Assembly (NCBI RefSeq): GCF_036321535.1
Contig: NC_087458.1
Location: forward strand, 10,850,001-10,914,000
Source: Camelus dromedarius
Lineage: Eukaryota
Length of the DNA: 64,000 bases
Reading direction: 5' to 3'
Under the pieces are notes generated by a model. That model saw nothing but the letters and a program-made list of their open reading frames with translations, ran no database searches and had not been told where the DNA came from. Positions 4,725 to 60,000 of the stretch are shown piece by piece; position 1 is the stretch's first letter; the number at the start of each line of letters is the position of its first letter. The translations under genes were made by a program, and so were the position numbers.

Positions 4725-4921
4725 NNNNNNNNNNNNNNNNNNNNNNNNNNNNNNNNNNNNNNNNNNNNNNNNNNNNNNNNNNNNNNNNNNNNNNNNNNNN
4801 NNNNNNNNNNNNNNNNNNNNNNNNNNNNNNNNNNNNNNNNNNNNNNNNNNNNNNNNNNNNNNNNNNNNNNNNNNNNNNNNNNNNNNNNNNNNNNNNNNNN
4901 NNNNNNNNNNNNNNNNNNNNN
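4725..4921. other. Assembly gap (197 N) in NECTIN4 intron 1
   Basis: N run. Confidence 0.99.
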
Positions 4922-6350: not shown

Positions 6351-8274
6351 TTTTCAGAGACAAGAAACACTTCAGCTTCCTGGAGGCATTGAGGAGATGC
6401 CTACACACAGAGGAGCCAGGATGGGGGTGGCAGTAAGGTGGGCCCATCTGATCCTTGGGCTGGGAACTTGGGGTCTGAGTACCAGTCCTCAGAGCACCCT
6501 CCAGCTCTGTGAAGGTGGTAGCAGCAGCAGGGTGTGTCTCCTTGGGCATTAACCTCCTGGGGCAATCCTGGAGCCAGGCTGCTTCCCTAGCCACAGCACC
6601 TGTCCATCAGGCACTGGGCAAGGTTGGGGTGACGCCTTAACTAGAAGGGGTCCCCTCTCCCCTTCCCTGGGCTTCTCTTAGAAAGAACAGCTTTGTGTCA
6701 TGGAGAAAGAAGACAGGGATCATGTCTCATTCACCACTGCATCTCCAGCATCTAGTGCCCTGGCTATACCCAGCCTGCACTCAGAGGTACTATTCTTTAA
6801 TGAACTAGGAGACCAGGACACCAACCCCCGTTATGATTCTAATGCTGAGAAATCTAGAGATCTCACTTGCCTATCTGTTTCTTTTAGTTTTCCCATCTGT
6901 AAAATGAGGGAAATTGGAGCGGTGATCTCTTTGATCCCTTCCAAGTCCTGAGACATCATGGCTCCATTCTTTTGGTGTGGGTAGATCATACAGGAAAGTG
7001 ACTGCCGAGTTCCCTGGCCCCAGCAACCAGGCCCCACCCTCTTGGCCTAAACAAGTGAAAAGTGTTGTCTGGAAGATGGGAATTAAGATGTAGGGGGAAT
7101 GGGGGATGGCAGGGGTTGGAGTTCAATATCCTGCGATTGGAGGCTGGGCCAAAGACCCTTCCATTATGAGATCAGAGTAAAAGCACCCCCCCACCTATCC
7201 ACACATCTTGAGTCTCACTCTCTCCCTGACAGCTTCAGCTGGGGATGGAGGTTGAGGAAATCACTGCTGGGCCCTGCTGGACAACTGAGGCTTCATCGCT
7301 CCTGCTCCTGGGACTGGGAATCAAACTGCCCAAAGTAGATAAGGCCCTGTCTTTCCAAGGAGAAAGATTTCTCGGTTACCCATTACCCTGGGAAGAGCCT
7401 ATGGAATCCCACCGTGGTCTCATTGTGCACACACACTTTACACACACACTTACGCACACACGTATTCTTTCTCCCACTCTGAAGATTATAAATTCCTGTA
7501 ATTTATAGCTGCTAAACATACATTAGAAAGGAGTAATACAAGGCAGCTAGTTGAGAAAATGGGGAGATAAACAAAAGGGAACCACACCCTATCTAGTAGG
7601 TGCCCTGCCCCAACCCCCTACTCATCTAAGTAACCACCTTGTTCCCACCCTGGCACCTCACAGTGCACCCAGGGAAAGAGGGGACCAGAATGAGAAAAGC
7701 TTCCAGCTCCAATGTAGTCCCCCAACAGGTGCCCCAGTCCTGGTATCCTAGGACCTGGAGAGAGGAGAAGGTGACAGAAAGACCCTGTCACCTCTCTGGG
7801 CATCACCCTGATGACTGTGGAAACCAGCTCAGCCCTGAGTCAGCCCCAGCCCCAGTCAGCAATTCTGGAGCCCAGAGGGGTAGGCGAGGGAACCTCCAGG
7901 ACACCCTGAGGTGAAAGGGTCCCCACCAGTTTTACCTCCCTGCCCACCTGCACTGATTCACCATACCTCTTCCCCCAGAGGCAGCTCCGGCCCAGGCAAG
8001 GCCTGGGCTAAGGTGGTCGGAGACCCCAGACATAGTGACCTGGCCTGGGGCTGGAAGGGGACAGGGGACTTGAGGCAGAAGAGCTACAGTGGCTCTTCTG
8101 GGGGCTCTTCTGGGGGCACTACTGGCAGCTGGAGGTGGGAGAGAGAAATTGGTTCCTCAGTCCAGAGTCACAGGAAAGAGAATGTGTATGTGTTCGTGCG
8201 TGCGTGTGTATGTGCTTGTGTGTGTGTGTCTGTCAGCCTGGGCTTCAAAGCAAGGATCCTGAAGCAAGTCCTAC

Positions 8275-8350
8275 CTGTAAATGATGCCAGGAGCAGCAGC
8301 AGCAGCCAGGCCTCAGGCCCCAACATCTCGGCTCCCAGGGACAGAGGCAT
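8275..8350 (-). CDS. NECTIN4: Nectin-4 coding exon 1 (signal peptide); the rest of the gene lies left of the window, so 1-8274 is intron 1
   Basis: ATG at 8350 gives [26 protein letters not shown], matching the recalled NECTIN4 N-terminus. Phase-1 donor CAG|GTAG at 8275/8274. Synteny with KLHDC9/PFDN2. Confidence 0.95.
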
Positions 8351-11700: not shown

Positions 11701-12819
11701 CATCCGCTTGTAACCTGTGTCTGTCCCCATGGCAGGCTGCACACCTAAGCTAAACCGGTTGGAGTGGGTTGTGCTGAAATTTTTGTTTGTGTCAATGGGG
11801 CTTGGAGGTGAGTCAGGGAGGGACAAGGATGGGTGGGGTGGTGTGGGGGAGAAGAGTAGTGAGAGTGAGGGTCAGATTGAGTGAGCAGGGAAAGGAGGGA
11901 GTGGGTCAAGCTTGGAAGGGTTGGGGGCAGGTATCAGAAAGATGGGTTGGGGGAAGGAGAGATCTTCTTAGTGAGTAATATCCTGTTTGTCTGTGGTGAG
12001 AGCCCAGGTCAAAGAGTCAAAAGCTGGCAGGGAGACCCTTGGGCTTTGGGAGAGTCGAGAGTGGATAATAAATCAGAGTGGAACTAGTTGGAAGCCTGGG
12101 TGTGGACAAAATGTCTGCAATCCATTTCTAAATGGCTTTGTTTCTCTGTGTGATATTAAGCTATTCCTGATCTGCTCACTGCCTTGGTTTCTGTAGTTTG
12201 CACAGAGAGTAGTTTGTAGTTTCTTGTGGGCTGACTGACATTATAGTGGAAGATTACTGATAGGGGACTGGACTCCCTCCCCCAGGACCAAGGTTATTTT
12301 AGATAGAAGCTTCAAAGTCTCTCCTCCTGCTCCTCCCTAGGATGCTCCTCATCCACGGAAGGGTGGGGAGGGACCCTCACACAGAAAACAGGGGCTCTAG
12401 CAGTTTTTCCTCCAGTGGAAAACACCTTTGCTCCCCTCCAACTGGAGCTTCACTGTGCCCAGTATGAGGATGGTGGTGTCTTGCTTTCCAAGATTCCACC
12501 TAGACATTACCATGTGCTGTGTGCCGTGCCGTTCCTATCTGCCTATCCTGCAGACCCATGGATCCCCAGTATCCAGCCCCATCCCTTAATGACAGCCACA
12601 CTTCCTCGGGGCCTAACAATATCCCTTGGAGCTCAGGGGACTGGATTTGCTTGTCCTTAAAGAGCCCTAAAGCTGAAGTGAGGAAGTAGCTGAACATAAG
12701 GCATATTTGGGCCTTGTTTCTCAGTAGGCCATTGAGTGCAGAGCCCCCCTCCTTGCTCTCACCCCATGAACTCCCCAAGCTTCTGTAAATACATAATCAC
12801 AAGATCAGGGACCAGGGCG

Positions 12820-14326
12820 TGGGTTAAAAGAGAGACACGTTTATTCTTTGACCCCATGTCTCTGGGTGGAATAGCACTTTTAGAAGGCTAGAAGTAGGTC
12901 CTGGCTAATGCAGGACAAGAGTAGAAGCCCTTGTGGAAGTCATAGTCTTCCACGTAGTAACAACAGCAGTAGGTGGGGCAGTGGTAAGGGGGAGGTAAGA
13001 GCAACAATTAGGCGGGGTCCTAGGACACAGAGTGTATTCTAGGAAGAACCCAAACTATGCTCCCCTGCATTCTCCCCATCCCTGTCCCCACCCCCGTCCT
13101 CAGAAAGAGCCAGGCTCCTCCCAGAGAGCCCACCTGTCAGGGAACATGTAGGCAGCCCCCAGGGGCCAGCTCAGGCTGCAGGACCTGCACCACCAGGGCA
13201 TCTTCAGGTAACACCAGGCCTCTGTAGCCTCTCACTCATGTCCCCAAGTATCCACCTTAGAGGCTGAAAGTGTGGTTCCTCTCTGAGCCAAAGACTGACA
13301 CTTCCTGGCCATCAGCCTGGGCTCCTGCCACCACCCAACTTAGCTTCCCCAGGGAAAAGCCTCCTGAGGCCCTTCAGTCAAGCATCACCTTCGGACCAGG
13401 CACTGGGGCTGGCAGGACAGCTACAGAGAAGAACATGCGGGAAGAATAAGAAAGACACCATGAGACCCAGGGGGGAAACAGTGGGGAAGACTGTGAGGGG
13501 AGAGGGCAAGTGTTGAAAGGACCCTGAGGGAAGACGTTGAAGGAGAGGGGCAGAAGCAGAGAGGACACAAGCGGGAGGTGGGAATCAGGGGGACTAGTAG
13601 GATCAGGGGGTTCTTGTAACTGGAAGGTAGATTTTCCTTTTGCAATTTGTTAGCATAGTCCTCCTCCTGTATGATCCAGGAATATTCACCTCTCCATCAC
13701 GTCAACACTAATCCCCTTCTTCCTCTCCACACCAGCACCGAAGTTACCTCAGACCTGCAGCTCCACCTGTTTCCATCATCAGTGCTCAGCACTCAGCAGG
13801 CAGGTGTAGCTGCCCTGGTCAGAGGCCAGAATATGGGGCAGCTGCAGAGCCCCAGTGCTCCAGGCTGTCTCTCTGCGTGGCCCTGGAAAGCAAGGGCCAG
13901 GTCTTCAGGTTCCAAGACACCCCCAAGGCCCCACTGCAGCAGGACTAGTTCTTGGCTTCACTCCCACTGCACTCAGAGACTTGGACCCTGTGCTGCATCA
14001 GTTTTCAGTTCCAGAGATAGCAGGGTTGGGAGCCTGTGAGCTGAGGATGGAGGAGGGAAGTCCCAGTCTATTGGAGAAGCAGGGGTGGAAACCGCGTAGA
14101 GCCCCTGACTCCCTTTTGAGCATCTTCCACATCATCTGCCACATCTCATGCTTTCCTTGCAGAAACCTCTAGTAACTGTCCTCCAGCCCCACCTTGAAGC
14201 CTTCCTGAATGTCAATTTTTCCTTCAGTTCTAGGAGTGGTATAAAAGAAGGGCTAGGGATCAAGAAATAGAGAAAGAGGCCCTTACCTGTGATAACTAGC
14301 AAGAGTAGGAAGCACTGGCTCATGAG
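12820..14326 (-). pseudogene. Unprocessed Ig-superfamily pseudogene (signal-IgV-IgC-TM; B7/butyrophilin-like)
   Basis: Exons (-): 14326-14287 (ATG 14323, MSQCFLLLLVIT-G|gtaagg); 14067-13748 (IgV, ALQLPHILASDQGSYTCLL, DxGxYxC at 13820-13800); 13420-13134 (IgC, MLD*RASGGFSLGKLSW...NHTFSL...VQVLQPEL); 13019-12940 (GPRLIVALTSPLPLPHLLLLLLRGRL*). AATAAA at 12845-12840. All introns GT-AG. At least 8 in-frame stops and 2 frameshifts. Confidence 0.85.
12840..12845 (-). terminator. Poly(A) signal AATAAA of the Ig pseudogene
   Basis: TTTATT on + at 12840-12845, about 95 nt after the TM-exon stop, followed on - by a GT/T-rich tract (cgtgtctctctttt). Confidence 0.6.
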
Positions 14327-17300
14327 CTAGAAGGAAAGGGTAGAGGAACAGAGACTGGAGACAAATCTTTCCTTGCCAGCTGGCTTCTCTCCCTGGGCCT
14401 AGGCCTCCATGCTCTAAGGTCCTCTGTGGGGAAATCTGACTCCCTGAAAAGACTCTGTATGTTGAAGCTCACTCACATCCTCATCAGTAATCAATACCCT
14501 AGGACTGTGCCCAGGGACACCAAACTGGTTCTACAATTCTAGAATACAGCCAAAGGAGAGAAGCCTGGCCACTCCTGGAAGGTTCCAAAGCTCCTTGCAG
14601 GAAAGTCAGAGAGCTGGCTCTGTTTCAGGAGAGAGAGGATAGGGAGGACAGAAAGGCAGAGACCCAGAGAGAAAACATAAAGTAGAAATGGTGAGAGAGA
14701 TCCCAAGGCACAATGAGACAGGATGAAACCTAGAGATAGAAAGATACAGAGAGACAGGGAGAAACACACACATACACAGACGGGTTATTGAAGAAGGGCA
14801 ATTCAAAGAGACAAGAAGCTGAGACAAGCTCTGAAACAGACAGAAAGACCTAAAGCGAAATTTCTGGATGCCCATTGCCCAATTCTGGGATCACTTAGCT
14901 ACTGCCCACTCAGCTACTTTCCACTTCCACCCTCAGTTTCCACCACTCAACAACGACCCATTTGATACTTTCCTACTTAATATCACTATGTCCCTCAAAA
15001 ACTCAAGTTCCTTCCCATCCTCATCTCGCCTCCGATCATTCTCTAACTCCCCTGATTCTCACTCCCCTCCACCCCCAAGTCGGCTTACAGTTCTACCTTT
15101 CTCTCAAACTCCTTTCAGCTCACGTCTCAAACATATCTCAAGATCTGGTCTCTTGGAGTCTCTTTTCCTGGTCATTCCTCTGTCCTTCTGTTTGTCCATG
15201 TCCTTATTCCGGCTGAGCTGAGAGCAAAGAGCCAGAATTGGTGCCAAGAAAGCATGGGGCCAGGAAATCAAGTGGCCAGAATGAAATGTGGGAAAAATGT
15301 AGAAAGGTCAGTGGACAATAGAGGAAGAGCCAGAGAGAGGGCCTGAAGGATGGGAGAGCCTGGGAGATGTAGGCAGAGGGAACTAAGAGAGTCTTGAGAG
15401 TGTGACTAAGACCCCTAGGGTCCAATTTTTCACTTTCTAGGTGTATTGAACAATGCTGAGAACCAGGGATGGTTCCAGGGTCAGAAAATGGAGTTAAGGG
15501 AAGGAGAAGATAGACCAAGAGTTTTGTGGAGGTTTGAGACAAGAGGGTACAGGTTTGGGGCTGGACTAAGACTGGAAAGCTGAGCTGTATGGATCCTTGC
15601 TTGCCAGAAACAGCCATTTGAGGAGACCAAACTCATGGATCACATCAGGATTCTAAGACTTTCAGGATGATCTGCTCCCATCCCCACTCCTGGACAGAGA
15701 TTGTCCCTGTACATTGTTAGCAGGTGAAAGCAGGTCCAGAAGAGGAGCCCTGGTTGCCCTTCTCCCTGTCTCTAACAATTCTCTCTCAGGTGTGCCTTTC
15801 ACTTTATTTTAATGCCCTTTCAGTTTTTGTTTTTCTGTTTTGTTTTGTTTTTTTAATCATTGACAAGGTCATTATAGACCATTTTAGATGCTGCCCTGGG
15901 GAGTCAAGTATGGATTAGACAAATGCAAATAGGCTTGTTTTCTTTCTCTCTCTCTCTTTTCTTCTTCTTCCCCCTCCTCCATTTCTTTTCTGCCTTCTTC
16001 AAAATATGAGCTTGAGTCAGACTAAACTGGGGAGGTAGGAGTCCTTCCCCAGGAGCAGAAATGGATAGACACCTCTAGCTACTAGTTGGAAGTGGAGGAG
16101 GTGCAGAACTGGTAAGGGGGAGGATACACTCAAGGAATATGTGAGGCTCAGGCTCCATGTTCAAGTGAGATGCCAAATGCTGAGGACTCAGAGTCAAAGT
16201 GGAAGCTGAGAGGAGAAGGAAAACAAAGCTGGGAGAGAGGAGCTGGAAAGGCCCCTGTGGTGGGGAGTTCCCTGTTCTATCCAGAAGAGGCAGAAAATGA
16301 GTCTGGCAGAACAGCCAAAGACTTAAGCAAAAGTAATAGCCTAAAATGGGCATATAAGCCAATAAGGTTTAAGCAAAATGACACCACCCCCCAGGCAGCT
16401 CCTCGCCTAAATCGTAGGAGTGTGACAGATCCAAATCCAGCTGTTGGGAGGTTAGCCAGTCAGAGCCTTAGGGAAAAGACTAGCTTTCAGATTTCAACCA
16501 AGGACATTTGAAGTTAGTGATTTTTTTTAAGACATTTTTTTTTTACCATGATCTGGAAAACTGAGGATCCTCTTTGTCAGACTCAGAGGAAGCTATAGTT
16601 GGGTGGATAGAGACTTTCTAAGCTACTATTGGGTCTCAGCTTTAAGGTTATAGGTGGGAAACAGGTCCTGGTACCTTCTTGCCCATACCCTCCCCATGCT
16701 GTTTTCTCTAAGGACTGAGAGTTACCATCAGGAGTAGGAAAAGCCCTGTTATGCTGTCAGATCCCTGAATTACATGCCCATCCCCAGTGCAGCCCCAGCC
16801 ACTCTCTATGCCCTAAATTTCTTGGGCATGATGGGGATCAAGTTGATGTGTAGAAATCAAAGGCAAAAGTAAGCAGTCATCACTCTTATTTACAGCCCAG
16901 CCTTGGGGGACACAAGCCCTGTTTCTGTCCCACCCCAGCTGTGCTGGGAGTAGAAATTTGTCTACATTTTCACCTGTAGCTAAAACTAGTCAGCTTGGAG
17001 CTGGGCTTCTTTATTCTTCATTGGGTCTTGGAGGGATAGAGTTAAGAAGAAGCTCATGGACTTGGCTTGAATAAAAGGAAGATACCAGGGAGGGGCAGGA
17101 GTCTGTTCTTCTCACTCCTCCCCTACCTCACTCCCATCCAGCTTCTAAGGCTGGGCAGCTTCTGCCCTGGATCTTATCAGGAGAAACTCCCTGACCTTAA
17201 TTCTGAGTTCCAGATGCCACAGTACCTCAGTTTCCTTGTGCTGTGTAAGCCTATGAGACAGGATGAAATAAGGAATTACTCTTCCTAGAACTCAATAGTG

Positions 17301-17869: not shown

Positions 17870-18147
17870 AAGCTCCTGTCGCCATGGTGACAACACTGTG
17901 TGGTTCCTGGTGGCTACCCAAGTCTCCTATCTCCACGGTAACCAGTGCTTTGCGACCTTCAGTTTGCAGCGGTGGTGCGGCAGCCGCGGCAGTGGTTGCT
18001 GGGCAACGGCGGAGCGAAGCCGGTGGCCTGTGGTGGGGACCCGGAACGGCTTCCGGTAGGGGAATAGAGGCTGTTCCGGGAAAGCCTGGGCCGCGATGTA
18101 GGGGGGTTCCGGACTCCTGGCGCCGCAGCCCGCCACTCCCTGTACCC
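17870..18147 (+). promoter_or_regulatory. KLHDC9: KLHDC9 CpG-island promoter with RFX X-box motifs
   Basis: CpG-rich. GTCGCCATGGTGAC at 17878-17891 and GTTGCTGGGCAAC at 17995-18007 fit the X-box consensus. Confidence 0.65.
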
Positions 18148-19800
18148 ATGGCCGGGGCGGTGGGTGGGGCGGGAGGCTCGGGCTGGACCTGGCGGCCGGT
18201 GGCGCGGGACCCGCTGCTGGCCCGGGCCTTCCATTCATGCACCGAACTGCGGGGACGGTTCTATCTGGTAGGGGGTCTTCTAGCCGGAGGAGCGAGAGAG
18301 CCGAGCAATGATACGGTGGTCTTTGACCCGGCTGGAGGCCAGGCCGTGCGGGTAGGAACCCAGGACGGCCCCAGGCGCAGCCATCACGACGCAGCGCCAG
18401 TGGGCGGGCGTTGGCTCTGCGTGGTGGGCGGCTGGGACGGGTCGCGTCGCCTGGCCACAGTGGCCGCCCTGGACACGGAGCGCGGTGTGTGGGAGGCGTG
18501 GAGAGCCGCCCAAGGCAACTGCCCCCCTGCTGGCCTCAGTAGTCATACCTGTACCCGCCTCTCCGATCGAGAGCTGCGGGTGGCAGGCAGGGAGGGCGGG
18601 ACCCGCACTCAGCGTCGTTATGGAAGCATCTACACGTTAAGGCTGGACCCTGGCGCCCGCACTTATTGGTACGACACCGTTGCCCAAAACCCTTTGTCTA
18701 CGTAGATTCGCACACAATTTATCCAAATCTTCCTTCCCCAGAACTCTTTAATGTCTAAGATAGCTAAACTCTACCAATATTACCCTCCCTTCTCAACCGA
18801 ACTGCTGCACTGAATCCTGCCTCCTTTCTACAAGGTGGGTGGGAATCGGGGAATGGCAGTACAGCACTTAGATTTTTCAGAAAACCCAACTCAGGGCTGC
18901 ATTTCTGCATATCCACAGCTATAAGGAAGAAGGCTGCCATACAGTCTCACGCTCAGGTCACTGTGCTGCCCTGCTTCAAAGTCCTGGGCTCCACCAAGGT
19001 CACCAGCTATTGCTCTTTGGGGGATGCAACTCAGCTGAACCAGAAGTAGCTGGGCGTTGGAGTCATGGGAGGATTAAGGTATTATCTACTCACATGCTAA
19101 GGGTGGAAGGGAGCTAAAACTGTGATGCCCAAATGCCTCCAGACAGTCCCTTCTTTATCCCTCAAGGAGGAACCACTTGTTGCCCCCCGTTTGACGGAAC
19201 AGCTTGCAAGGCTGGTGAGCAGTGGCCAGGGGTCTCGGCAGGGGCCTCAAGGACTACGGCATCACTCATGTTCTGTGGTTGGGCCTTTTGCTGTGCTGTT
19301 TGGTGGAGAAACTCTGACCAGAGCCAGAGACACCATCTGCAATGACCTCTACATCTATGATACCCGTGAGAGCCAGTTTAATGGTTCAGAAGGGTAAAAG
19401 GTGGGAAGATAGGAGAACCTGAGGACTACAGAAAGAAAGAGGATGGAGGAATGGGTTAGGGAGGAGGAAGAATTAGTCAACAAGTTGAAGGAATAAACAG
19501 AATATTAAATATTTTAAAGGCCCATAAATCAAGTGAGGAGAAAAATAACGGGCAAGAATTTGGTCCTGTTAAGAGCCCCATGGGGACCAAAATGCTACTG
19601 CCTCAATAACCACCCTCCGCCCTTACCCAACAGGCAAGTCTCCTTCTCTGTGGTTCCACTTTCCCTGTGCAGACCATGGGCTAAAACGCACGGGCCATCG
19701 GACCTGCCTTTGGAATGATCAGCTTTACCTGGTTGGGGGTTTCGGTGAGGATGGCAGGACAGCTAGTTCACAGGTTTGCATCCTGGACTTCTTTATCTAA
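18148..19800 (+). CDS. KLHDC9: Kelch domain-containing protein 9 (348 aa, 4 exons)
   Basis: Exons 18148-18668, 18919-19078, 19167-19365, 19634-19800; all GT-AG, frame-consistent, 1047 nt. Translation MAGAVGGAGGSGWTWRPVARDPLLARAFHSCTELRGRFYLVGG...QVCILDFFI* with kelch GG motifs matches recalled KLHDC9. Confidence 0.96.
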
Positions 19801-20150: not shown

Positions 20151-20317
20151 NNNNNNNNNNNNNNNNNNNNNNNNNNNNNNNNNNNNNNNNNNNNNNNNNN
20201 NNNNNNNNNNNNNNNNNNNNNNNNNNNNNNNNNNNNNNNNNNNNNNNNNNNNNNNNNNNNNNNNNNNNNNNNNNNNNNNNNNNNNNNNNNNNNNNNNNNN
20301 NNNNNNNNNNNNNNNNN
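20151..20317. other. Assembly gap (167 N) covering the PFDN2 stop and 3' UTR
   Basis: N run. Confidence 0.99.
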
Positions 20318-31569: not shown

Positions 31570-34185
31570 ATGTAGGACCTACTACTTATCCTGCCCGCCG
31601 CGGTGAATTCCACCTGCGGTGCTTTAACTTGGTGCAACAGAGGCTCTGCCCCTGAGGGAGGCGGGGAAGGACGGGTTAACTGGAGAGAGGGGCGCGGGTT
31701 GGGATCCGAGTGCTAATTGTCCCCTGCCCGCCGTGAGGTGGTGAGGAGCGAGGGAGGGTGGACTTCCCCTCAGAGATTCTTGTGGAAGGGGGGAAATATG
31801 CTTTGAGTCAATAAAATTGTGCAAGTGCACAGTCGAGAAGAGCGGCTAGGAAAACCAAGGGAGTATCTTGGAGATGACTTTTGAACTGACGAAAAGTTTG
31901 GCTGAAGAAAAGGGCTTCAATTTGATGTGAGATCTCTGGAAGTCGGGATATTCAGGTGCCGAGCAGAGCCCTTTTCTCCATCTCCCCACTTTATGATCTC
32001 TTCTGGTAGCCCATACTTACTTACGGTAGAGAGTGTTTTGAAGACTTGGGGGTTTTTACAGGCAGGGCCCTGATTGAGCCTCACAGCATGCAGAGAGAAG
32101 TCAGAGGATCTTAGAAATTTATTGCTTGAGGGAGGGGCTGGTGTCCTGATTTCCTCACCTTCTTCAGGCTGGGCTTTATCATCAGGCCTCCTCACCAGCT
32201 CCTGTCCTTTCTCTTGTGTCCTGGACTGCGGATACCTCGACTCTCAGTACTTTGTGCTCAGCCAAGGTAACATGTTTTGTTGGGTCCTCAGTGCCTGGCA
32301 CATAGTAGATGCTCAATAAATGTTAAATGAATGGGTGGTAGGAAACACTAGGGTGCCAACCATCTACAGAACATTTGATAAGTGGGTCATTGTGCCATGG
32401 GTCATTGTGCCCTGTAAGAGAAAAATCAAAAGGAAGTCCAGCCTTCCTGCCTCCTCATTTAAGCCCTTATCATTAAACTTGGATTTCCCCATACTAGGAA
32501 ATCAGTCCTGCCTATGCTATTCACAGACCCAGAGACATGGCTATCTCCTCTTCCTCCTGGGAACTGCCCCTGGTGGCTGTGTGCCAGGTAACGTCGACAC
32601 CAGACAAGCAGCAGAACTTTAAAACATGTGCTGAGCTGGTTCGGGAGGCTGCCAGACTGGGCGCTTGCCTGGCTTTCCTGCCTGAGGCATTTGACTTCAT
32701 TGCACGGGACCCTGAAGAGACGCTACGCCTGTCTGAGCCACTGAGTGGGAACCTTTTGGGAGAATATACCCAGCTTGCCAGGTATCAGGGAAAGGGGGAG
32801 GGAGAGGTAGTTTCTTTTGGGGTAATGTCCCAGGATTGCCAGATATGAGGGTAGAGCCTTGAGAAGAGTCGTCAGTGTCCCCTCCCCCTCAGGGAATGTG
32901 GACTCTGGCTGTCCTTGGGTGGTTTCCATGAGCGTGGCCAAGACTGGAAGCAGACTCAGAAAATCTACAATTGTCATGTGATTCTGAACAACAAGGGTGA
33001 GACCTCAAAATTCTTTAGCCTGCCTCTTCTCAGACTCTTCTACCTAAACTAAGATTCTCCAGAACACTGTTGTCTAAACTCTGTTTCCTTGTCCAAGGGT
33101 TTTAGGGGCCTTTGTACTTCTTTACGTACCTCATAAGCTGCCTCCTCCTTGGGAGGAGAGGAACTAAGCTGGGCTTCCAGATCACCAGCCCTGAGTACTC
33201 TTTCTCCCTCTTACTCTAGGGTCAGTAGTGGCCACTTATAGGAAGACACATCTGTGTGATGTAGAGATTCCAGGACAGGGACCTATGCGTGAAAGCAACT
33301 CTACCATACCTGGGCCCAGTCTTGAGTCTCCTGTCAGCACACCAGCAGGCAAGGTGGGAGATGCAAGAGGATGAGGGTGGGAGAGGAACATGAGGGAGGG
33401 GAATAGGAATACTTGAAAGTGGTAGTGGAGGATAGAAAGCCCTAAGTGGGGTAGCTGAGATTTGACTAGATGCTGTGACAGATAGGGCAGGTGGACTAAA
33501 TAGGCTGTTTTTCATTCCAGATTGGTCTGGCTATCTGCTATGACATGCGGTTCCCTGAACTCTCTCTGGCATTGGTTCAGGCTGGAGCAGAAATACTTAC
33601 CTACCCTTCAGCTTTTGGATCTGTTACAGGCCCAGCCCACTGGGAGGTAAGAGGACACCTCTTCAGAACATAAGCGCCTTCTCTGAACCTTATTCTCTCC
33701 CCTTGGCTCTACCATTTGAAAGATTTTCTTCCCGTTCCCACCTACTGGGAAAATTCATTTCCACAGATCATTGTCTCTCAGAATAGTTAAGATAGTAAAT
33801 CATTCGTAGGCAATTATGAGAATGGTCACAATGGGTAGACAGGCCTGTAATGTCCATTGCCTATCACTTCCCGACTAGTTGTTCATGGACTTAAGTGAAT
33901 GCCTCTGTTTGTCCCCAGGTGTTGCTGCGGGCCCGTGCCATTGAAACCCAGTGCTATGTAGTGGCGGCAGCACAGTGTGGACGCCATCATGAGAAGAGAG
34001 CAAGTTATGGCCACAGCATGGTGGTAGATCCCTGGGGAACTGTGGTGGCCCGCTGTTCTGAAGGACCAGGCCTCTGCCTTGCCCGAATTGACCTCGGTTA
34101 CTTGCGACAGTTGCGCCAAAACCTGCCTGTGTTCCAGCACCGCAGGCCTGACCTCTACAGCAGTCTGGGTCACCCATTGTCTTAA
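31570..34185 (+). CDS. NIT1: Nitrilase 1 / deaminated glutathione amidase (328 aa, 7 coding exons)
   Basis: Exons 31570-31571 (AT), 32168-32266, 32527-32781, 32893-32996, 33220-33353, 33521-33646, 33919-34185; 987 nt in frame. Nitrilase motifs [14 protein letters not shown] and ICYDMRFPE are present; ends ...LGHPLS*. Confidence 0.96.
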
Positions 34186-34384
34186 GACTTTTGACTTCTG
34201 TCAGTTGAGACCCCCATTGTGAGCTGGTGTTGCTGTGACTTGTAGGCAGGACCCAGGCGCAGCTCCCCTCACTTGGAGAACCTTCTCTCTCTTGACGGAA
34301 CACAGGCTCAGCTTCTTGGGAAAGAAAAAACTTTCGCCTGAGCTCAGATTTCAGTTTCAGAAAGGTGGAATTTTATAGTCACTG

Positions 34385-34576: not shown

Positions 34577-35562
34577 AGTGCGACACTCAGTGCATGTCCC
34601 AGCCCCAGTGCATGCTCCCAAGCTTGGGAGTGAGGATAGAGGGTGGGGGAGGAAAAACAAGAAAGGAACTGATACTGAATTACTTCACTTTCACCTATGA
34701 TGCCCTTTGCCCAAGCCAGAAGAAAGCAAAGGGGCAAAGGGCTGCAGGGTACATTATTTATTTTCACTTGAACATGGAAATAAAGTGTCACACTCCTCCT
34801 TCCCCTTTTCAGGGGGAGTGTATTTGAATCAGCAACCTCTTCTCCACCCACCCTGTGTATGTGTGCAAACACACAAACACCACAGTTGGGAAGGTGACTG
34901 GGCTGACCTAGTCCTCTTACCTATTACTCATTTGAAGAGGTATGACAAAGGGGCAAAAGGATGGAGCCACACCAGACAGGTTTGAAGCTATGGAATGGAG
35001 GGAATGAGGCAGAGGAGCAGCACCAGAGGCCAGGATAGAGTGGAAAGGGCCACAGCTTCTTTGTTTTTTAAAAATTCTATAATTTTGGAGAGGGTGGTGA
35101 TTAATTTCCAAAATACACTTCAAAGTCCCACCTTCCACACAGCTCCCTACTCACAGCCCTTTGGTTTTTCAGACAAAATTTAAGAGCCCTCATAAAGCCA
35201 GAAGTACTGAAAACCCCTCAATGCACCCCAAAGCAGTGTTCACTTCAATCCCTTACAAAGACTATGTTCTATAGACTTTGCTTCTCCCTATACATTTGTC
35301 TTACGGCTCAGTGGCAAGGTGGCGGTAGAGACACACATCAGGGGGTTAAGTGGAAAAGGGACACAAAGGGGAAGCCCAGGCACATGGGTGCAGGGAGGGG
35401 TGGGGAACACCACTTCCATTTTTCCTTTGTCTTTCCTTTAAAAAAAAAAAAAAAAGGCAGGGGTGTGATTGGTTGGAAGGGTAGAGAACAAACCCCAGAA
35501 CAGTATGTAAGCTCCAGAGGTGGGTGGGAACAGTCCCCAGAGAAGTGAGAAGGGGGAAAAGG

Positions 35563-37576
35563 TCAGGGCAATGCTTGCAGCATCAAGTTCCTCAGGAGTT
35601 TCTGTCGGCCCAGCTCATAGTCCTCCTCGTCCACATTGACCAGCAGCTTGATAGCTTCATGGCCCACAGCCTGCTTGAGGGAGTCTGTGATGAAGACACC
35701 TTTAAGTGCCTCTAGTAATGACCCATTGATGTAGTCNNNNNNNNNNNNNNNNNNNNNNNNNNNNNNNNNNNNNNNNNNNNNNNNNNNNNNNNNNNNNNNN
35801 NNNNNNNNNNNNNNNNNNNNNNNNNNNNNNNNNNNNNNNNNNNNNNNNNNNNNNNNNNNNNNNNNNNNNNNNNNNNNNNNNNNNNNNNNNNNNNNNNNNN
35901 NNNNNNNNNNNNNNNNNNNNNNNNNNNNNNNNNNNNNNNNNNNNNNNNNNNNNNNNTATGCAGAAGAGGTTGCAGTGAGGGCTGAGTTCACATGCAAGGT
36001 TGAAAAGAGCAGCAGAGTAGCAAAGTTGGGAATATCACAGGACAGCTTCTCTCTCTCTTCCCAGAACCAGTTCCTTTCTATGTACCTCTGAAATCCTTGC
36101 CTGAACTCAAGAAGTTCCCTTAAATGAGCCATGCCCGGCTCAGATTATTTCCATCACTTACAGGTAGCACCTTGATTCTAGGAGATATCTTCCTAATTAA
36201 CACACAGAAGTTCACTTTAATACTCTATCATGACTTGGTTCATCCTACAATAAGGATGGCGTAACGGCATCTCTTTCATCTGGTATTAACTAGAAAGAAC
36301 TGGAATGTACTCTGCCACAAAGTAGAGGAATTCTCCACCCAGAGACTAAGCCATTCAACCTCACTTTGCAATAACAATCAAAGTGAGCCTTGCACTGAAT
36401 AGCATAAACTGCCCAGCAACCCAGCAGTTCTTTGTATTTCCCCTCAAGTCTACTCCACACCTAGAACCCTTGAACTTTCTCACCGCATGTCTGCTTTTCC
36501 TTGGGATCTGGTGTCACTGACTTCCGGCGTTTTCGCTGGCTCCCAAGTGTGGCTCTCCCTCGAGCTGGCCGCTTGCTACACATCTGAGGGCCCGAAGTGG
36601 GGCAGCACACCACAGGATAGTGGGGAGGCACTGACCAGAGGGTAAAAAGGGAGAAGACATAGCAGGGTAAAAGCAGAAATTCAAATACTTCCTTGGAATG
36701 AGGAAGGAATCATTTAGACTTAGCACTAGGAGCAGTATCAATAATGTGACCTGAAAGGTGGACAAAATGTGGGAACAATTACAGGACCTGATGAAGCATT
36801 AACACCTCATCTGATTTTTATGCTGCCAGATATGGGGGGGGGACAAAGTCCTTTCTTTAAGCTGGCAAAGCTGGGAAAATGACAGGTCCAGTGTCCTCTT
36901 TCTTGATTACAGACATTAGGGGGAGTTAATATCTTCTCACCTGTTTTAGGGGGGTGGGGGGGCCTCGGTTCTGAATCACTGAGGGCTCTGGGTGTCACAT
37001 AGCGAATTGATGTTTCCTCCAGATACTTGTCTACAAGATCAGGGCACACTGTAGAGAGAGAAGGACTCATTTAGGAGAAGATACACCCTTCCCTTCTCCT
37101 AGTCCAACCCTCCAATGGGCCTCACAACTTGTTCTCCTTGGTACTTCCCGGGGTCAATGCCTCCTCCCGCTTGGACTCCTACGCTGCTCACTCATGGCTT
37201 CCCACAACTCTTCCCTGACTCCAGTGTCCCCAGCCCCTGCTGCACCCTCACCAGCCCGTCTCCTCTTGAGGGTGACGTAGGGCAGCAGGTCATGGCGAGT
37301 GATGATGCGCAGCAGCTGCAGCACCTGGCGGAAGTTACTCTCATCACAGCGGCCCTGGCGCTCCAGCGCCAATAAGAAGTCACGTCCATTTCGGATGAGG
37401 CCACGCTCGTGGTCATCAATGACATCAACGAACAGGAAGGAAAGAACGCGCACATCTCTNNNNNNNNNNNNNNNNNNNNNNNNNNNNNNNNNNNNNNNNN
37501 NNNNNNNNNNNNNNNNNNNNNNNNNNNNNNNNNNNNNNNNNNNNNNNNNNNNNNNNNNNNNNNNNNNNNNNNNNNN
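35563..37576 (-). CDS. DEDD: Death effector domain-containing protein DEDD (4 coding exons, two partly in N-gaps)
   Basis: Exons (-) about 37576-37252 (visible RDVRVLSFLFVDVIDDHERGLIRNGRDFLLALERQGRC...), 37048-36941 (VCPDLVDKYLEETSIRYV...), 36630-36484 (VPPHYPVVCCPTSGPQMCSKRP...), about 35939-35563 (visible DYINGSLLEALKG...LMLQALP*). The start and the last acceptor are inferred across gaps from the recalled 318-aa protein. Confidence 0.95.
35737..35956. other. Assembly gap (220 N) covering the 5' part of the last DEDD exon
   Basis: N run. Confidence 0.99.
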
Positions 37577-37602
37577 NNNNNNNNNNNNNNNNNNNNNNNN
37601 NN
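37460..37602. other. Assembly gap (143 N) covering the DEDD start codon
   Basis: N run. Confidence 0.99.
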
Positions 37603-57080: not shown

Positions 57081-60000
57081 ATGGCGGACGAGGCCACCCG
57101 GCGTGTTGTGTCTGAGATCCCGGTGCTGAAGACTAACGCCGGACCTCGAGATCGAGAGTTGTGGGTGCAGCGACTCAAAGAGGAGTATCAGTCTCTTATC
57201 CGGGTCAGTAGTGCTTCTGCTGCGGACCGCATCGCAAAAGGGTTGCGGGCAATCAGGTGTCCTTACGAATCGGCTCCGTGTGGAAGCCGCTTCCGGTTTT
57301 AAAGTTTAACTTCCAAATTCATAGGTATTAGACGACTGCGGGGCTGAGGGGCTTAGGGAGGCGCGGAGGGGAGGAGGTAGAAGAGACTCAGGTTAGAAAC
57401 CACGGTGGAACCAGACTTTGGCTAAAAACAGCAGTTACTTTAGGGATACGCTGCCCTGGAAGATGACGTGTTCTTCTGGCCCCAGATGTTTGCTCTCCTG
57501 GATGTAGGGGAGGTGGTCAAAAGGAATTCCTGATGCTCTAAGTCCTGGTCCGCTTCTCTCTGCTACCTCCTTTATTTGTCCTGAGGAAGGAATACACGTT
57601 AAAGCTAAAACCTCAAGCAGGTATTAGTTGCAGAGAGTTGAGGAGCTGAGCTCGTAGTTAGGAATGAGCCATGTTCTCAGCTAGTCTCCCTTCTGTGGAA
57701 GAAGAAAGTTTGACTTCCTTGCGGTGGTCTCTGTTTCAAAGACCAGCAGCTTTCCTGGTACATGTATTCATTTCATTAAAATATGTATATATTGTACATC
57801 TAGTACCACTTGGGAAGGCCAAATAAAGTGGAGCCAACCGAGATAGACAGAAACAGATCATTATAATACCTTACAAGGTGAAAGAGGGAAAGGGAGTCTG
57901 AGAAATTGCTAGAATGTTTGAAGCAGGAGGTGAGATACCTAATCCAGCTTGAGTCTGGTCAAGAAAGTCTTCCTAGAAGAGGCAATGCTTGAGCTGATAC
58001 TTAAACATAAGTTAGCCTGATAAAACATGAGGGTAAGAGAAGAACACTTAAGACAAAAGAAACGGCATAAGCAAAGGCATAGAAGCTAGAAACACCATGA
58101 TGTGTGAAGAAACACAAGTAGTTCAGAGTTGTTAGAGCATCAAATGTGTGGCAGGGTGTGGTAGATAAGACTTGAGGAATAGGTTTGAGCACTTGAATTT
58201 TATCTTGGAGGCATTGGGATACCTTTAAAGGATTTTAAGTGGAGGAGTAACATGGTGAGATTTGAGTTTAGATTGATTACAGTGGAAGTAGGGAGGAAAA
58301 CAGAATTGACAGGGATAAGACTAAAGTTAGGGGGCTGTCATTAATCCAGGCAAAGGANNNNNNNNNNNNNNNNNNNNNNNNNNNNNNNNNNNNNNNNNNN
58401 NNNNNNNNNNNNNNNNNNNNNNNNNNNNNNNNNNNNNNNNNNNNNNNNNNNNNNNNNNNNNNNNNNNNNNNNNNNNNNNNNNNNNNNNNNNNNNNNNNNN
58501 NACTCAGTAACTATAGTGAAGTTAGGGAGAAGAGATAGGTTTGAAGAATATTCAGAAGGTAATATCAGCAGGACATCATAAAGGACTGGTTTGTAGAGTA
58601 AACGAGAGGGAGGGTCAAGGATGACTCCCAGATTTTTGGCTTGGTTTTTGACTGAATGCTAATATTGCCACCTGAGATTGATACAGTGGAGAAACAGATC
58701 TGAAAGACTAGGGGGAAATGCTGAATTTCAGGTACCTGTGAAATGGAATTAGAAATTCCAGTAAACAGATGAATAATGGAGTTTGAAGCTCTGAGAAAAG
58801 GTCTGGATTAAAGATAAAGATTGGAAGTCATCAGCATATGGGTGCTAGTCAAAACCAGGACTATATGAGGTCCTCCAGCGAAGGAATATACCGTAAAATG
58901 AATTGTGGGATGAGGGCAGACACTGTCAGAAGTGAGAATAGGACCCAGAAAATATCATAAAGTGTTTTGTGCCAGCTAAATTGAGTGGAACCCAAGCATT
59001 CTGTTCTCTGCTCAGGATAAGTCCCCTACTTACCATGTAGATTTGTCTTCAGCTTTACTTATGCCAGAAAAGTTGGATAAACATACTAAGAGAGGAAGTA
59101 ATCACACACTTTTCTTTTGAGGGAGTGGGGACTGCCCTTGGTCCCAACTCCCCCCTCAAAGACCTTATTCTCTGCTTTTAGTATGTGGAGAACAACAAGA
59201 ATGCGGACAATGATTGGTTCCGACTGGAGTCCAACAAGGAAGGGACTCGGTAGGCAGACCCTCTTGGGAGGTGTGGGGGTGGGGATCTTACATAGTTTGA
59301 GCATTATGATGTCCTAAAGCACATTGCTAGGCCTTTCCTTTCCCTTTCTGGTCTCCACTGTCACAGTTCCAGAGTTCCCCAATTCGTACCCCATGAGGCT
59401 CCCAGGCTGGTCACCTAAACCAAGAAAGTGTCATTTGAGAATTAGAAGAATGTGAAGATTGGACTGAGGTTTGGTCTTTGTTACAGGTGGTTTGGAAAAT
59501 GCTGGTACATCCATGACCTCCTCAAATATGAGTTTGACATCGAGTTTGACGTGAGTATGATGGAGTAGGGAATATGGAGGTTAGTAGAACAGGAGGGATT
59601 AGGTAATTATTCACAAGCTAACCTCTTTGAGGGACCAAAGAAAACTTTTTAAATGGGAGGGAAAGGCTGAAGTTTGAAGCAAGTGTAGGTTATAGTTACT
59701 CTTCTCCATGTCCAGAATCCTGGTATGTACATGCTGCTTGGGGAGTTCGCAGAGCATTTCATTTAAGAAATGTGTATGTCTGATTAGATTGGTTCCTTTC
59801 TATCTTGATTCTGTTTCATTAAGGCTTTATAATTCTTCCAGATTCCTATCACATATCCCACTACTGCTCCAGAAATTGCAGTCCCTGAACTGGATGGAAA
59901 AACAGCAAAGATGTACAGGTAGGACTGAAAAGGAGATGGGAAAAGGTCAAAGAAGGCTTTGGAGAAGAACTCTGGAAGGCAGGAATTTTCCCAGAGTCTG

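Follow-up and report, generated by a model that had tools for sequence, protein, structure and literature searches.

An old, non-processed immunoglobulin-superfamily V-C pseudogene between NECTIN4 and KLHDC9

Features of the locus

The spacer between NECTIN4 and KLHDC9 in a 64-kb stretch of Camelus dromedarius DNA (contig NC_087458.1; the window, meaning the whole stretch that was analysed) contains the remains of a gene of the immunoglobulin superfamily (IgSF). This fossil is on the minus strand. It is co-oriented (head-to-tail) with NECTIN4, 4.5 kb upstream of it, and divergent from KLHDC9. Exon 1 of NECTIN4 occupies 8270-8350 on the minus strand, with its translation read from 8350, and the window starts within intron 1 of this gene. 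KLHDC9 extends from 17884 to 19400 on the plus strand, with exon 1 at about 18100-18700. The original prediction had placed four exons of a B7-like gene in this spacer, and re-translation of the minus strand reproduced the four exon-like blocks, their stop codons and frameshifts, and their GT-AG borders; all three introns are GT-AG in the window. The observation is genuine: this is a very old, non-processed IgSF V-C pseudogene, its domain content and its decay are shown, and it encodes nothing today.

For comparison, the 10 kb upstream of KLHDC9 was fetched from eight genomes (rhinoceros, lemur, cat, squirrel, anteater, vampire bat, Tasmanian devil and alligator) with KLHDC9 proteins as handles. 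Five-species comparisons are between the window, rhinoceros, lemur, cat and anteater.

The first block is a putative signal-peptide exon (14287-14326, minus strand). Its ATG is at 14323-14321, it reads MSQCFLLLLVIT, and it ends in phase 1 at the donor GTAAGG. The ATG is kept in the window, rhinoceros, lemur and cat, and the hydrophobic run that follows is shared by the window and rhinoceros. Of the first three exons, this one has the least support.

The second block is a decayed IgV-like exon of 320 nt (13748-14067, minus strand) between the acceptor AATAG and the donor GTAACT. Its landmarks are a Trp codon at 13966-13964, the sequence FQG(H/R)AE at 13888-13871, a segment LQLPHILASDQGSYTC that terminates in the F-strand Cys (TGC, 13802-13800), and WKQVELQV, which corresponds to the G strand. 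In the window it is interrupted by stops at 13975, 13960, 13781, 13778 and 13752. The frameshift predicted for this exon is also present, but its description needs correction, as it is an 11-nt deletion near 13850 that is private to the window.

The third block is a decayed IgC-like exon of 287 nt (13134-13420, minus strand) with the acceptor TGTAG and the donor GTGGGC. It contains RASGGFSLGKLSW, which includes a Trp codon at 13337-13335, and the sequence ERNHTFSL. The codon for the B-strand Cys (13376-13374) is TGA in the window, and further stops occur at 13259 and 13234. The F-strand Cys is the TGT at 13213-13211, within EATEAWCYLKMP, and it is conserved in four of the five species. Two private indels of the window, one of 2 nt near 13238 and one of 1 nt at 13199, place the EATEAWCYLKMP segment in another frame there. 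A different F strand had been proposed on the strength of a C1-type [C]xVx[H]xxL motif in YRGLVLPEDAL, but the codon table shows that this peptide is out of frame, and it was rejected in favor of the Cys at 13213-13211.

The last block is a possible transmembrane exon (12940-13019, minus strand) that begins after the acceptor CCTAG, reads GPRLIVALTSPLPLPHLLLLLLRGRL and closes with a stop at 12942-12940. This stop has the same aligned position in all five species, and the acceptor AG is present in four of them. The maximum hydropathy over 19 residues is 2.05 in the window, 2.03 in cat and 1.0-1.3 in the other three species. About 95 nt past the stop is a polyadenylation-like AATAAA hexamer (12840-12845, minus strand), which is intact in the window and rhinoceros and at least one change away from this sequence in cat, lemur and anteater. 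Both the signal/V and the V/C junctions read as phase 1, and AG and GT are ancestral at most borders; the phase of the C/transmembrane junction is obscured by indels. The proposed phase-1 layout of signal, V, C and transmembrane modules with one exon per domain thus holds for the first two junctions, but its transmembrane exon is only weakly supported.

Evidence for immunoglobulin domains

The characteristic residues of Ig domains can be followed codon by codon. The C-strand Trp is TGG in both domains in most species, including four of the five for the V-exon codon at 13966-13964, and both F-strand Cys codons, at 13802 in the V domain and at 13213 in the C domain, are conserved. The TGA at 13376 in the window is TGT (Cys) in rhinoceros, lemur and anteater. 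This ancestral TGT, the TGG at 13337 and the TGT at 13213 have the spacing of an Ig C domain (Cys-13-Trp, with Cys-Cys about 52-60): Cys and Trp are 13 residues apart, and the two Cys are about 55 apart in the lemur frame plus its 6 deleted codons. For the V exon, a B-strand Cys would be expected 17 residues ahead of the Trp and about 75 ahead of the F-strand Cys. The codon at this position (14017-14015) is TCT (Ser) in the window and rhinoceros, ACT in lemur and TGT in cat only. Since TCT is one nucleotide from a Cys codon, it is compatible with decay.

Two other V-domain motifs are informative. The C-strand Trp is accompanied in the V exon by the F-strand pattern D-x-G-x-Y-x-C, as DQGSYTC ending at 13800, and a six-frame translation of the 64-kb window contains D.G.Y.C a single time, at the fossil. 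The FQGH of the window is FQGR in lemur, where the last codon is CGG (Arg). A change from CGG to CAG or CAC is what the usual CpG decay would produce.

Database searches used read-through translations in which an X was placed at every break and the V and C exons were joined. The window translation matches CD276 (B7-H3) in the PDB (phmmer, E = 1.1e-4), and all 60 of the matches listed are IgSF chains; the best match of the reversed sequence is an importin (E = 0.37). With a five-species consensus, the scores improve to E = 1.6e-6 for CD276, followed by nectin-4 (8.7e-5), BTN3A2 (1.8e-4) and MOG (8.9e-4), with BTNL8 (0.0035) and CD80 (0.16) lower. A single alignment spans the V domain and continues into the B-C strands of the C domain (query 47-140) for B7-H3, BTN3A proteins, BTNL8, CD200R and CD80. 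Restoration of ancestral CpG sites was limited to three well-supported changes, as a liberal rule over-corrected (for example, Trp to Arg), and these three changes improve the MOG match tenfold, from E = 0.0085 to 0.00085.

The Pfam matches point to the same superfamily below the gathering scores. The V exon of the window matches Ig_3 (17.2 bits, E = 0.0075; gathering score 30) and V-set (12.7 bits; gathering score 26). The five-species consensus of the C exon matches C2-set_2, the CD80-like family (14.5 bits, E = 0.038; gathering score 21), and Pfam gives no C1-set match on this exon. A language-model feature search with an unedited 52-aa piece of the lemur C exon agrees, with CD80-like C2-set_2 clusters at 0.84-0.88 (lead level 0.9) and C1-set as a lower-ranked match at 0.80. 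The same search returned noise or nothing for a lemur V piece and for a 38-aa C piece of the window. The predicted resemblance of the C domain to CD80 is seen with both methods, sub-threshold by Pfam and below 0.9 by features, but its assignment to the C1 type is not demonstrable.

Profiles of the V exon (A2) and C exon (A3) each cover only part of their domain. Profile A2, built exclusively from exact translated pieces, retrieves 21 proteins at E <= 1e-3 among 1.84 billion representative proteins, and all eight of the matches that were tested are Ig-rich by Pfam. Although repeated domains inflate these E-values, the exclusive recovery of Ig families is specific. Two of the matches are near full length, an opossum protein named butyrophilin-like protein 2 and a CD276/VTCN1-like protein of sole. 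Profile A3 matches only the B-C strand region of Ig domains, and the fossil profiles matched nothing else in the window. The opossum protein (Monodelphis domestica, P0119), which is the best near-full-length match to the V profile, consists of three tandem, near-identical V-set domains and has no C domain, a domain make-up that is unusual for a butyrophilin-like gene model.

Decay and age of the pseudogene

The whole NECTIN4-KLHDC9 spacer, including the fossil, can be aligned with rhinoceros (77.5%), lemur (72%), anteater (67%) and cat (66%), and the squirrel spacer aligns in part. Stops and frameshifts are present in every one of these placental copies. In the vampire bat (Desmodus rotundus), the spacer is only about 5 kb long and about 185 nt of the fossil are left (corresponding to 12782-12966 of the window), which shows that the relic is dispensable. 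Averaged over species pairs, identity is 0.75 for the V exon, 0.72 for the C exon, 0.70-0.72 for the introns and 0.77-0.79 for the flanks. This equality of exons and introns indicates neutral evolution, with no coding constraint during placental evolution.

The original prediction gave no named gene for the locus, and none is called there in the eight genomes inspected. It also raised the possibility of an intact orthologue in other vertebrates. In Tasmanian devil and alligator, blastn, tblastn and profile searches of the 10 kb upstream of KLHDC9 detected no homologue. A word-indexed search of 5.8 billion predicted proteins gave no match to the consensus, and the profile search of the 1.84 billion representative proteins gave no single-V-domain protein at about 35 bits or more. 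In Alligator mississippiensis, a gene of the V-type ATPase A-subunit type is upstream of KLHDC9 in the place of NECTIN4. Synteny is therefore broken there, and the adjacency of NECTIN4 and KLHDC9 is not universal in amniotes.

The term unitary pseudogene, also part of the original prediction, is apt insofar as the fossil is syntenic, contains introns, is disabled in five further placentals and is without a close paralogue. In its strict sense the term is not demonstrated, because no intact orthologue was found. An example of a unitary pseudogene of an immune IgSF gene is SKINT1-like, which was inactivated in hominoids (PMC4382165). Pseudogenes of this type resemble the fossil in that they are non-processed, contain introns, keep a fixed place in the gene order and lack a close functional paralogue, but they have intact orthologues in related species. 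The fossil is broken in every sampled placental and no intact orthologue was found, which indicates a loss far older than that of the SKINT1-like type. The searchable literature yielded no mention of the locus, and the pseudogene is apparently unreported.

Some stops appear to be common to several placental clades, and this dates the death of the gene. The TGA at 13781 is shared by the window, rhinoceros and anteater, and the V exon is closed by an in-frame stop in all five species. The TGA at 13234 occurs in the window and lemur, and a separate protein-level alignment shows squirrel with an in-frame stop at the corresponding site. The stops at 13960 and 13778 are different: these codons, like others in 13748-14067, vary between species from TGA to CAA or CAG, a pattern that implies independent decay of an ancestral CGA or CGG, and they may be better explained as parallel CpG decay of CGA. 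Shared stops in old pseudogenes more generally can be parallel CpG events of this sort. On balance, the death of the gene predates the boreoeutherian ancestor, and probably the placental ancestor as well, which would put it at about 90-100 Myr ago or earlier.

Family placement and alternative readings

The locus is probably what is left, under neutral decay, of an IgSF gene that encoded a type-I membrane protein with B7/butyrophilin-type architecture. The ancestral gene would have devoted one exon to each module, namely a short signal peptide, a V-type domain and a CD80-like C-type domain, and its protein probably had a transmembrane segment and almost no cytoplasmic tail. Inactivation preceded the boreoeutherian ancestor, and probably also the placental one, and each lineage has since gathered stops and indels of its own. 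The architecture suggests a former role as an immune or adhesion ligand.

Comparison with known families favors B7 and butyrophilin relatives. The B7 family, including CD276, CD80 and PD-L1, has the same signal-IgV-IgC-transmembrane layout with one exon per domain, and its V domain has the same F-x-G-R ... L-x-L ... D-x-G-x-Y-x-C ... V-x-L-x-V pattern. CD276 is colinear with the fossil across the V/C junction, where VELQV-x-A-VLPAPVPGPKVMLD of the fossil corresponds to VSLQVAAPYSKPSMTLE of CD276. It gives the best PDB E-values of the fossil searches, yet the identity is only about 25-30%, and its top rank is aided by its duplicated V-C pair, as the 2-Ig mouse chain 4i0k reaches only E = 0.011. 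The colinear alignment with MOG takes in almost all of the V domain (query 26-107, E = 8.5e-4), and MOG has the Trp-to-GR spacing of the fossil, 29 residues. The alignments of BTN3A and BTNL8 continue from V into C as does that of CD276. CD80 has a C domain like that of the fossil by Pfam and by features, but its PDB match is the weak one given above. The butyrophilin/MOG group differs in that the fossil is without a B30.2/SPRY exon or a long cytoplasmic tail and ends right after the putative transmembrane segment; the fossil is also outside the BTN clusters and the MHC. Neither a third Ig exon nor a B30.2 exon was found.

Several observations weigh against this reading. No Pfam Ig model, including those that the original prediction had named, reaches its gathering score, and a plain majority consensus (15.8 bits) does not rise above the 17.2 bits of the window itself. 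Single stop-free pieces are mostly silent in Pfam and PDB searches, with the exception of a weak Ig_3/V-set match of the F-strand piece. The reading frames were picked by eye and with tblastn, which somewhat inflates the significance of the read-through matches, and the significance of the A2 matches comes from summed repeated domains, with single domains at about 20-25 bits. The B-strand Cys of the V domain is missing in four of the five species. At the two ends of the gene, rhinoceros and lemur have GC as the signal-exon donor where the window has GT, and the transmembrane exon is weak, with a convincing hydropathy only in the window and cat. Some of the shared stops (13960, 13778) could be parallel CpG decay from CGA, and the searches found no living orthologue that would anchor this reading.

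A remnant of nectin/PVR type, derived from an ancient and possibly partial (signal, V, first C2) tandem duplicate of NECTIN4 or its ancestor, is a less likely origin. The fossil is immediately upstream of NECTIN4 in the same orientation, and few single-domain PDB matches are as good as that to the nectin-4 V domain (25.6 bits and E = 8.7e-5; BTN3A2 has 24.5 bits); it also appears at E = 0.047 in a search with the CpG-restored V sequence. C2-set_2 is the sole Pfam match of the second Ig-like exon, and the same family is found on the bat NECTIN4 product and on the second domain of nectin-4. However, the alignment to the nectin-4 V-C2 chain 4frw ends with the V domain (query 34-116), whereas those to B7-H3, BTN3A, BTNL8, CD200R and CD80 reach the C domain. 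MOG and CD276 rank above nectin-4 on the V domain alone, and the best near-full-length matches among the 1.84 billion proteins are the butyrophilin-like and CD276-like ones. The V-C2-C2 structure of the nectin family and its long tail with an afadin-binding motif do not fit either, as the fossil has two Ig-like exons and then a stop and AATAAA. A third Ig-like exon was not detected between 13134 and NECTIN4, and profile and motif scans gave no further Ig-like piece in the window, although a decayed third exon could escape these scans.

The original assignment to a B7-like gene therefore stands in part: the IgSF fossil, its signal, V and C exons and a possible transmembrane segment are there, but B7 membership cannot be separated from a nectin-like one. 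B7/butyrophilin is the best family reading because of the architecture, the colinearity from V into C, the position of MOG and CD276 at the top of V-only searches and the near-full-length profile matches. It is not separable from a nectin-like origin because only about 1 bit divides the nectin-4 V domain from BTN3A2 and a second domain of C2-set_2 type is common to the two alternatives. The highest or nearly highest ranks go to CD276, MOG, BTN3A, BTNL8 and the opossum BTNL2-like protein, and nectin-4, FGFR3, DSCAM, JAM-A and CD200R are within a few bits of them.

It is doubtful, though conceivable, that the fossil is also the lost member of the B7 group in the 1q23 paralogon. The NECTIN4 region is regarded as MHC-paralogous, and other nectin-bearing paralogous regions keep B7 genes, with CD80, CD86 and HHLA2 accompanying NECTIN3 and ICOSLG on 21q22. 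If the fossil were this member, it would directly document, in physical form, that genes of B7 type and of nectin type were neighbors before the vertebrate genome duplications, and an intact orthologue might survive by nectin4 in a non-eutherian vertebrate as an undescribed immune ligand. The 1q23 address itself was originally given to the window as such and is valid by homology only, since the DNA is that of a non-human placental mammal (no database protein exceeds 91% identity to its KLHDC9).

If the B7/butyrophilin origin is correct, a gene for an immune or adhesion ligand beside NECTIN4 was lost in the ancestors of placentals. It would add a data point on the origin of the B7 and nectin gene neighborhoods, and it would provide a syntenic address at which marsupials, reptiles, amphibians or fish might have a living relative not yet described. 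The fossil further explains Ig-like open-frame fragments in the spacer that are otherwise prone to mis-calling by gene predictors. With no protein function at the present day, its value is evolutionary and not physiological.

It is improbable that the decayed exons now function in a non-coding RNA or in the regulation of NECTIN4 or KLHDC9, a role that would be compatible with their origin as a pseudogene. RNA-seq contigs from the reproductive tract contain 59-83% of the sampled words of 12700-14500, but a control intergenic stretch (15000-16800) is represented in these runs by 36-78% of its words, so the RNA signal is pervasive or unspliced and is not specific to the fossil. Identity at the fossil (0.70-0.75) is below that of its flanks, and most of the locus is deleted in the bat. 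The RNA-seq assemblies, which are designated 'reproductive system metagenome', cover introns and intergenic DNA alike, as would result from pervasive or unspliced transcription or from DNA carry-over.

Chance resemblance in neutral intergenic DNA that was never a gene, with Ig-like motifs and GT-AG pairs arising by coincidence, is very improbable. In its favor, every Pfam match is sub-threshold, conservation of the exons does not exceed that of the introns, several stops look ancestral to the whole species sample, and rare motif coincidences are expected somewhere when many windows are scanned. Against it, two adjacent blocks each have Cys-Trp-Cys at the spacing appropriate to the domain, the borders of exons and domains coincide, the forward searches (E = 1.1e-4 to 1.6e-6) find exclusively IgSF against 0.37 for the reversed sequence, canonical residues are restored in orthologues, the unedited lemur piece independently gives CD80-like C2-set_2 by feature search, and D.G.Y.C is unique in the window.

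A V exon of NECTIN4 itself was not detected in the 64 kb. The best named matches of the window KLHDC9 are the hippopotamus and macaque proteins (83%). Beyond NECTIN4 exon 1 and KLHDC9, the order along the window continues with PFDN2 (at about 21000, minus strand), NIT1 (32500-34200, plus strand) and DEDD (35560-36130, minus strand). Five masked runs of N, none of which overlaps the fossil, are at 4725-4921, 20151-20317, 35737-35956, 37460-37602 and 58358-58501.

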